Assembly: GCF_963853765.1 (NCBI RefSeq)
Contig: NC_088859.1
Span: forward strand, 35,836,001-35,900,000
DNA length: 64,000 bases
Direction: 5' to 3'
Origin: Magallana gigas
Lineage: Eukaryota
Every line of letters starts with the position of its first letter. The stretch's first letter is position 1. This document shows positions 12,841-12,906 of the stretch, piece after piece. Below the pieces are notes generated by a model that worked only from the letters and a program-made list of their open reading frames with translations, did not search any database and had not been told where the DNA came from. The position numbers were made by a program, and so were the translations under genes.

Positions 12841-12906
12841 CATCTTCGCTAGCCAAGTGTCCGATTCGTTGAGAAAAACGAATCGGACACTTGGCTAGCA
12901 AAGATG
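12841..12906. mobile_element. 66-bp hairpin micro-MITE with 9-bp TSD (family H, copy A)
   Basis: CATCTTCGCTAGCCAAGTGTCCGATTCGTT-GAGAAA-AACGAATCGGACACTTGGCTAGCAAAGATG; identical flanks AAGACAAAT at 12832-12840 and 12907-12915. Confidence 0.9.

Follow-up and report, generated by a model that had tools for sequence, protein, structure and literature searches.

The locus raises the question of what three very short hairpin elements are, which type of transposase carried them, and whether their palindromic shape is kept for its own sake. They lie in a window of 64 kb (the whole stretch of DNA analysed, C7:35836001-35900000 of an assembly of 564 Mb in 29 contigs, with ten large chromosomes and 33% GC). 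A sequence-only reading had taken them for minimal Mutator-type parasites in which palindromy rather than core sequence is maintained. Our results lead to a different answer. The window elements are likely TIR-only internal-deletion derivatives (micro-MITEs) of a multi-lineage AcademH family, an assignment made from the TIRs, the 9-bp TSD and a helicase gene, with a presumed transposase. The elements and their duplications are as follows.

Copy A: 12841-12906, no strand assigned; hairpin of 66 bp made of TIR only (spacer type A): 30 nt of the type-A TIR on the left, 37 nt on the right.
Left TSD of copy A: 12832-12840, no strand assigned; AAGACAAAT, right copy at 12907-12915 identical (perfect 9 bp).
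Copy B: 23975-24059, no strand assigned; hairpin of 85 bp made of TIR only (spacer type B): about 50 nt of TIR on the left, about 32-35 nt on the right.
Left TSD of copy B: 23966-23974, no strand assigned; CTACTCTCA, right copy at 24060-24068 reading CTAGTCTCA (8/9 match).
Copy C: 24224-24309, no strand assigned; 86-bp TIR-only element of spacer type B, arms of 45 and 42 nt with a 2-nt centre.
Left TSD of copy C: 24215-24223, no strand assigned; TTTAAAACC, right copy at 24310-24318 identical (perfect).

A search with the shared 17-mer and a comparison of the flanks bore out all three hairpins, with their 17-bp ends and 9-bp TSDs. The 17-mer CATCTTCGCTAGCCAAG occurs six times in the window (three forward, three reverse) against 0.03 expected from shuffles; five of the matches are exact and the sixth, with one mismatch, is the right end of copy A. 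The apparent loop of copy A is deeper right-arm TIR sequence, the arm depths being 30 and 37. Copies B and C, separated by 165 bp, have a rare arm variant in common. As to the surroundings, two TRIM-like intronless ORFs are found in the window at 223-2892 (+, 889 aa) and 9900-11906 (-, 668 aa), both with RING and B-box matches and the second also with NHL; copy A is upstream of the start of the 668-aa ORF, about 935 bp away. Very high-copy repeats surround copies B and C (23710-24073, 24347-24437, 24711-24983), where the depth in reads and contigs exceeds that of the flanks by factors of hundreds to thousands, and a (CT)n run lies near copy B at 23826-23874. One contig of sequencing run X1 skips 23690-24098, possibly an allele without a 409-bp block containing copy B.

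Genome-wide, CATCTTCGCTAGCCAAG has 1,300 forward and 1,303 reverse matches at up to one mismatch (reversed control, 0), so the possible objection of few other copies falls away. The TSD is reproducibly 9 bp, as had been supposed: in a sample of 51 distinct complete elements, 30 have 9-bp flanks without any difference and eight have flanks that differ by one base (38/51 at up to one mismatch), and shifted-flank controls gave 0/51 within two mismatches. A perfect 8-bp duplication is seen in 3/51 and a 10-bp duplication fits 0/51. In these 51 elements the TSDs vary in sequence, have 36% GC and lack a TTAA motif. Sizes of end pairs are bimodal: among the 27 pairs listed on C1, 13 measure 814-858 bp and ten 75-158 bp, the other four being 552, 779, 1,224 and 1,226 bp. 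The consensus of seven long-class copies (92% mean pairwise identity) is 827 bp long with perfect 79-bp TIRs (for example L001:1501-1579); it has no ORF of note and is the abundant non-coding member. The short members are non-coding and of many copies, have TIRs and TSDs and are kin to a longer coding element, as is usual for MITEs. Members of 1,226 bp and about 1,590 bp were considered as coding forms and rejected: they are the 827-bp element with unrelated insertions and have no coding capacity. In the flank of the main-type TIR (L001:1580-1660), and also at L032:1090-1146, the stretch from the TIR to the start of the helicase has motifs resembling a CCAAT box (AGCCAATCAG / ATGATTGGCTG) and a TATA box, and this promoter-like region is retained on one side of the 827-bp MITE. 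Same-orientation family TIR ends recur six times at intervals of about 13 kb at C2:46218919-46311200 and three times at 7.92-kb intervals at C1:44363960-44379816, which suggests tandem segmental duplications, each with one element end.

Alignment of 19 full TIR variants, taken from this genome and from metagenome contigs evidently containing bivalve DNA, gives two conserved blocks with a freely varying spacer at positions 18-45 between them. Block 1 covers positions 1-17, for which the search itself selects. Block 2, C(C/T)CTTGGC(G/A)GAT at about positions 46-58, is nearly invariant and was not selected for by the search. Its CTTGGC is an inverted copy of the GCCAAG at positions 12-17, making a conserved nested inverted repeat in each TIR. 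Beyond the 17-mer, identity to the TIR of the 827-bp element is 50% for the core of copy A and 78% for that of B and C. The inner stems, which had been called unrelated, are the variable spacer between conserved TIR blocks and can be aligned at 50-78% identity. Six or more spacer subfamilies can be told apart, and in four of these long members turned up. Genome counts on the forward and reverse strands are 129 and 152 for the type-A inner TIR, 169 and 149 for the type-B inner TIR, and 82 and 79 for type-D ends. We agree with the earlier proposal of several sub-lineages that have one common terminal sequence and hence presumably one transposase type. A 17-mer scan of metagenomes returned 120 contigs (L071-L190; OBLZ, JYMV, OCZB, NSIT), about half of them chance matches in unrelated DNA. 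Family contigs among them bear the identical 17-mer on further inner-TIR variants and again TIR-only hairpins (L080, L086, L111, L130, L175), and the family with its hairpin derivatives therefore probably exists in other bivalves too. No helicase or long interior ORF was seen in the family-bearing contigs among these 120.

Longer members and helicase loci next to family TIRs are listed here.

8,411-bp type-B element: C8:24398351-24406761; inverted inner-TIR pair with a two-exon helicase gene inside.
8,411-bp type-B element: C8:24448015-24456425; inverted inner-TIR pair with a helicase gene inside.
8,827-bp element from the type-D search: C4:21008973-21017799; helicase exons from 200 bp inside the left TIR.
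5,406-bp decayed element (L023) from the type-D search: C1:17908351-17913756 (17.91 Mb); helicase, two sister copies.
TIR followed by helicase, type-D search: C1:75827508 (75.83 Mb).
560-bp derivative with helicase exon 1, type-D search: C5:44117290-44117848.
Helicase adjoining a TIR, genome search with the L032 helicase ORF: C1:34676644 (34.68 Mb).
Helicase adjoining a type-A TIR, genome search with the L032 helicase ORF: C5:24639890 (24.64 Mb).
590-bp type-A element: L032:983-1572; TSD AGGTAATAC on both sides, ORF beginning 165 nt from the terminus.

Full-size members (8.4-8.8 kb) share the terminal 17 bp with the hairpins and have inner TIRs characteristic of their lineage. Spacing and scores do not differ between the two C8 elements, which lie at a distance of 49.7 kb and possibly represent a single segmental duplication. 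When a 490-aa relative served as query, the helicase gene on C8 proved complete in two exons (24406126-24406557 and 24404772-24405776), a 442-aa open frame with no stops; the helicase matches of the C4 element are shorter pieces, one with a stop. At C1:34674866-34676467 there is a helicase open frame of 650 aa. The ORF of L032 is the N-terminus of a DEAD-box helicase (PF00270, E 2.8e-8), and its homologues lie 170-500 bp inside family TIRs and read inward; in family members the start of the helicase gene lies some 165-200 bp inside one of the TIRs. Among named proteins the nearest are 'ATP-dependent DNA helicase RecQ-like' of a scallop and a nemertean. Relatives have DEAD and Helicase_C domains, and their RecQ_Zn_bind match is weak and below the Pfam cut-off. 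At least four TIR lineages have this gene at one and the same position and orientation, with intact frames and only 41-57% amino-acid identity, which points to long-term retention. Among the candidates discarded were four long helicase-search matches (P0099, P0107, P0146, P0149), which had been considered as transposase fusions and are cellular RecQ/Sgs1/BLM proteins, and P0011, a helicase/DUF5641 chimera. Two-exon RecQ-like helicase genes of this kind occur at no fewer than 40 loci over all chromosomes, many with intact frames of 300-685 aa, for which reason several AcademH families seem to coexist in the genome.

It was the 9-bp TSD that had pointed to a Mutator-type transposase. TSDs of this length and long TIRs are typical of MULEs, and the genome has no fewer than 81 matches to the MULE domain, several of them within open frames of more than 1,000 aa. 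The MULE-type TSD length (about 9-11 bp) is however shared with AcademH and does not discriminate between the two. The sequence-only reading had proposed a search for long copies with a MuDR transposase ORF. Long copies of 8.4-8.8 kb were found, none with a MULE domain: 0 of the 81 genome matches to MULE (PF10551) fall inside the 8.4-kb (C8, two), 8.8-kb (C4) or 5.4-kb (C1) members, and none within 10 kb of the exact terminal 17-mers listed on C1 up to 54 Mb. With a RecQ-like helicase in the long members instead, and with 47 unpaired against 4 paired arm changes (see below), it is extremely unlikely that these are Mutator-like micro-transposons moved by a MuDR-type transposase and that hairpin shape, not core sequence, is maintained. 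The helicase could also be a passenger, i.e. a captured host gene, and the family could belong to another helicase-associated or unclassified superfamily such as KolobokH or P-type, a view which gains from the fact that the family's transposase is deduced and not read directly. Kolobok elements have a TTAA TSD and P-type elements one of 8 bp, whereas the TSD here is 9 bp of varied sequence without TTAA; moreover, the helicase is RecQ-like, not Pif1, and a mere passenger would hardly be kept in its place, orientation and frame across those TIR lineages at such divergence. We consider the passenger explanation very improbable.

AcademH is the helicase-encoding lineage of Academ, a superfamily of cut-and-paste DNA transposons; PMC10045372 and PMC10799480 cite Kojima 2020 (Mob DNA 11:15) for it. 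The features of the present family agree with it: the TSD is 9 bp at up to one mismatch in 38/51 elements, a DEAD/Helicase_C superfamily-2 helicase is found in TIR-bounded elements and, at four further loci, beside TIRs, and TIRs of 79 bp (consensus, 827-bp member) or inverted inner-TIR pairs (8.4- and 8.8-kb members) bound the elements. Because these TIRs and the 9-bp TSD go together with an internal RecQ-like helicase in an oyster, we place the family in AcademH and not in Mutator or Kolobok. The XPG domain that marks AcademX and a sublineage of AcademH is absent from the long members, since none of the five genome matches to the XPG nuclease domain (PF00867) is located in them. PMC10045372 gives TSDs of 9-10 bp for AcademH and of 3-4 bp for AcademX; DEAD/Helicase_C domains of transposon origin come from AcademH or KolobokH according to PMC10799480; and PMC10294476 describes bivalve-specific amplification of Academ, with 100 curated autonomous bivalve consensus sequences of 5.6 kb on average.

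How the hairpins relate to the longer members can be read from their arms and junctions. A gapped-pattern search with exact inner 9-mers yielded 211 hairpins in the range 59-89 bp and 123 in the range 90-120 bp (controls, 0), which makes at least 334 of 59-120 bp in six or more spacer types. The main-type hairpins (L003, L020) correspond to the outermost 40-44 nt of the TIR of the 827-bp element followed by the complement of that piece. Each hairpin consists of a left-TIR and a right-TIR fragment joined at depths of 19-54 nt that are copy-specific and largely independent between arms: 30/37 in A, 50/32 in B and 45/42 in C, and 25/45, 44/19 and 36/36 at other loci. Junctions have an overlap of 0-3 nt or a filler of 1-8 nt, and almost every sampled copy has a junction of its own. 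The 65-bp product predicted for deletion between two direct AAACCCTTGGC copies of the full element is present at C2:27665276. There are also multi-arm clusters: L037:1467-1649 (C8:34734546-34734728) is a complete type-A hairpin plus extra tandem arms within one TSD (GGCTAAGCT), and at C6:20149223-20149326, C4:40990344-40990441 and C9:4888656-4888708 left or right extra arms follow at about 35-bp spacing. Among about 100 hairpins listed, roughly ten are perfect zero-loop palindromes (examples are C3:9808984, C1:45801542, C3:55745612 and L032:1501-1572). This is more than independent breakpoints would give, and for this reason a symmetric route, or later erosion of perfect centres, adds to hairpin formation too. 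The notion that hairpins mimic the native 30-nt spacing of GCCAAG and CTTGGC was dropped; the observed spacing is mostly 40-60 nt, a poor fit.

Judged from the sequences of the arms, the palindromy of the hairpins is inherited from the long inverted ends of their parents and is not maintained by selection. Within lineages 51 arm substitutions were counted, 47 in one arm only (unpaired) and 4 in both (paired), the latter at sub-lineage-defining or CpG positions, and arms that decay in this way without compensation are not being maintained as palindromes. The claim of maintained palindromy is further contradicted by unequal arm depths within copies and by copy-specific junctions. The two arms of hairpins show a mismatch of 5.0%, compared with about 3.5% for the paired TIRs of 827-bp elements when the aberrant L028 is set aside (7.6% with it). 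In one 827-bp sub-lineage (L013, L021, L024) the two TIRs consistently differ at three positions, which indicates that the arms are not homogenised there. That the elements are little more than two TIR pieces was correctly seen. As for minimal elements at the lower size limit, they are indeed small, yet they are internal-deletion products of 0.8-8.8-kb parents and no separately evolving minimal design.

The way in which the hairpins arose may be sketched as follows. An Academ DDE transposase, which we infer in the remaining 6-6.4 kb or so of the long members, would bind the conserved TIR blocks, excise the element and insert it with a 9-bp staggered cut. A hairpin would arise by loss of everything between a point 19-54 nt into the left TIR and a similar, largely independent point in the right TIR, most likely through aborted synthesis-dependent repair of the excision gap or through slippage or micro-homology joining at the inverted repeats, and its palindrome would derive from the TIRs of the parent. 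As the two termini are kept, some short forms may be mobilised again in trans. This deletion mechanism is inferred from junction anatomy, which is of the double-strand-gap-repair or inverted-repeat-slippage type (independent depths, micro-homology or filler, tandem extra arms, the 65-bp deletion product). Going one step further, the hairpins might be a by-product of AcademH recopying after excision, in which the element's own RecQ-like helicase drives repeated strand invasion and dissociation and aborted rounds leave 19-54 nt per TIR. If this is true, they would be a genome-wide trail of the former positions of a few autonomous copies, and about 25-30 bp per end (the outer conserved block) would be enough for mobilisation; we regard this extended proposal as speculative and rather unlikely.

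Some short forms are mobile as units, to judge from junction types that recur at several loci and from a probable empty-site allele of copy C, and the family has recently been active. The main-type CCCCATATGGGG junction form is found at three loci (C1:4.21 Mb, C1:47.85 Mb, C3:9.81 Mb), and one perfect palindrome of type E at two (C3:55745612, C4:25617908); some loci sharing a junction may be segmental duplicates, and L061, L067 and L068, with 0.6-1.1 kb of common flank, are such duplicates and not independent insertions. Sequencing runs labelled 'oyster metagenome' contain the window. In four read sets position 24206 is joined to 24309 (five raw reads in X24; contigs in X1, X6 and X15, with eight replacing letters in X6), and contigs bridging into the left arm of copy C are present as well. 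The joint is probably an empty-site allele without copy C that keeps a single TTTAAAACC, seen with 21-nt anchors in a repeat-rich region. At L032 the right end of a hairpin doubles as the right end of the 590-bp element with its own TSD. A 92-bp hairpin also sits between two helicase exons of a decayed AcademH copy (C1:29106525-29106600), and together with L032 this makes two cases of a hairpin inside the parent's helicase gene.

Two other histories of the hairpins have to be weighed against deletion followed by occasional remobilisation. Most hairpins may never have moved as short forms, each marking the site of a former long member that was excised and whose gap was partly refilled from a sister copy between intact TSDs. 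Nearly every sampled copy having its own junction, with largely independent arm depths and micro-homology or filler, would fit such a trail of footprints, as would the large excess of hairpins over long members in types A, B and D and the additional arms in tandem (L037; arms spaced by 35 bp at C6:20149223, C4:40990389 and C9:4888656), which resemble repeated invasion and dissociation. Junction types that occur at different loci, the L032 hairpin end that serves as a transposon end and the rare arm variant common to neighbours B and C are harder to reconcile with it, and we hold it to be possible, on the doubtful side, for the majority of copies. Probably both processes occur, and the choice between footprints and mobile short forms is a matter of proportion more than a true alternative. 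Alternatively, the palindrome came first: a few perfect masters with equal arm depth were amplified, and their unstable centres were trimmed copy by copy through hairpin- or cruciform-directed breakage and end joining. This would account for arm depths that never exceed about 54 and for zero-loop palindromes (about ten of the roughly 100 listed) being commoner than independent breakpoints predict. However, some copies have an arm deeper than any perfect master seen (50 in copy B and L056), and perfect forms exist at many depths (36, 44, 47, 48, 50), so that many independent origins would be needed anyway; this order of events seems to us unlikely, if conceivable. The preferred reading remains that of TIR-only deletion derivatives of AcademH parents, some of them mobile.

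A 9-bp TSD in bivalves thus does not imply Mutator, as a helicase-carrying Academ lineage is abundant there, and a plausible misclassification is corrected. At least 334 tiny palindromes and the MITEs of about 827 bp are now tied to AcademH parents. They form a natural deletion series for a little-studied superfamily, from which one can read the conserved parts of the TIR (positions 1-17 and about 46-58) and how short a remnant of each end persists in apparently mobile copies. The junction anatomy is a usable record of donor-site repair after excision of an element with its own RecQ-like helicase, and the link between the element-encoded helicase and gap-repair-type junctions merits specialist attention. 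For annotation it is relevant that palindromes of 59-120 bp are easily confused with hairpin-RNA genes or new element classes.

Compared with known systems, the novelty is modest: these are non-autonomous AcademH derivatives, a known kind, and no new parasite that maintains palindromes, and what is new is the natural deletion series. In the published work searched, to which the primary AcademH paper did not belong, no description of non-coding 827-bp and 59-120-bp TIR-only AcademH derivatives was found. Like AcademH, the family is a TIR-bounded DNA transposon of several kb with a 9-bp TSD and a RecQ-like helicase inside, in a bivalve host; it differs in its non-coding derivatives (827 bp, and TIR-only forms of 59-120 bp), in having a transposase that is here deduced, and in the lack of an XPG domain. 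Mutator-like elements resemble it in the 9-bp TSD and long TIRs and differ in that the family has a RecQ-like helicase and no MULE transposase. With Foldback (FB-type) elements it shares the ability of the whole element to fold into a hairpin whose middle is short or missing. In FB elements the arms are long and made of tandem sub-repeats, whereas the arms here are 19-54-nt pieces of an ordinary TIR without sub-repeats (checked on one long member). A further comparison is with MITEs and internally deleted derivatives from abortive gap repair, such as the KP-type deletions of the P element and Ds from Ac. Like these, the family's short forms are non-coding, keep termini and TSD, show micro-homology or filler, are mobilised in trans and reach high copy number; what sets them apart is that, independently in hundreds of copies, both breakpoints lie within the TIRs, so that the products are near-palindromes of 59-120 bp and the sizes are distributed bimodally.
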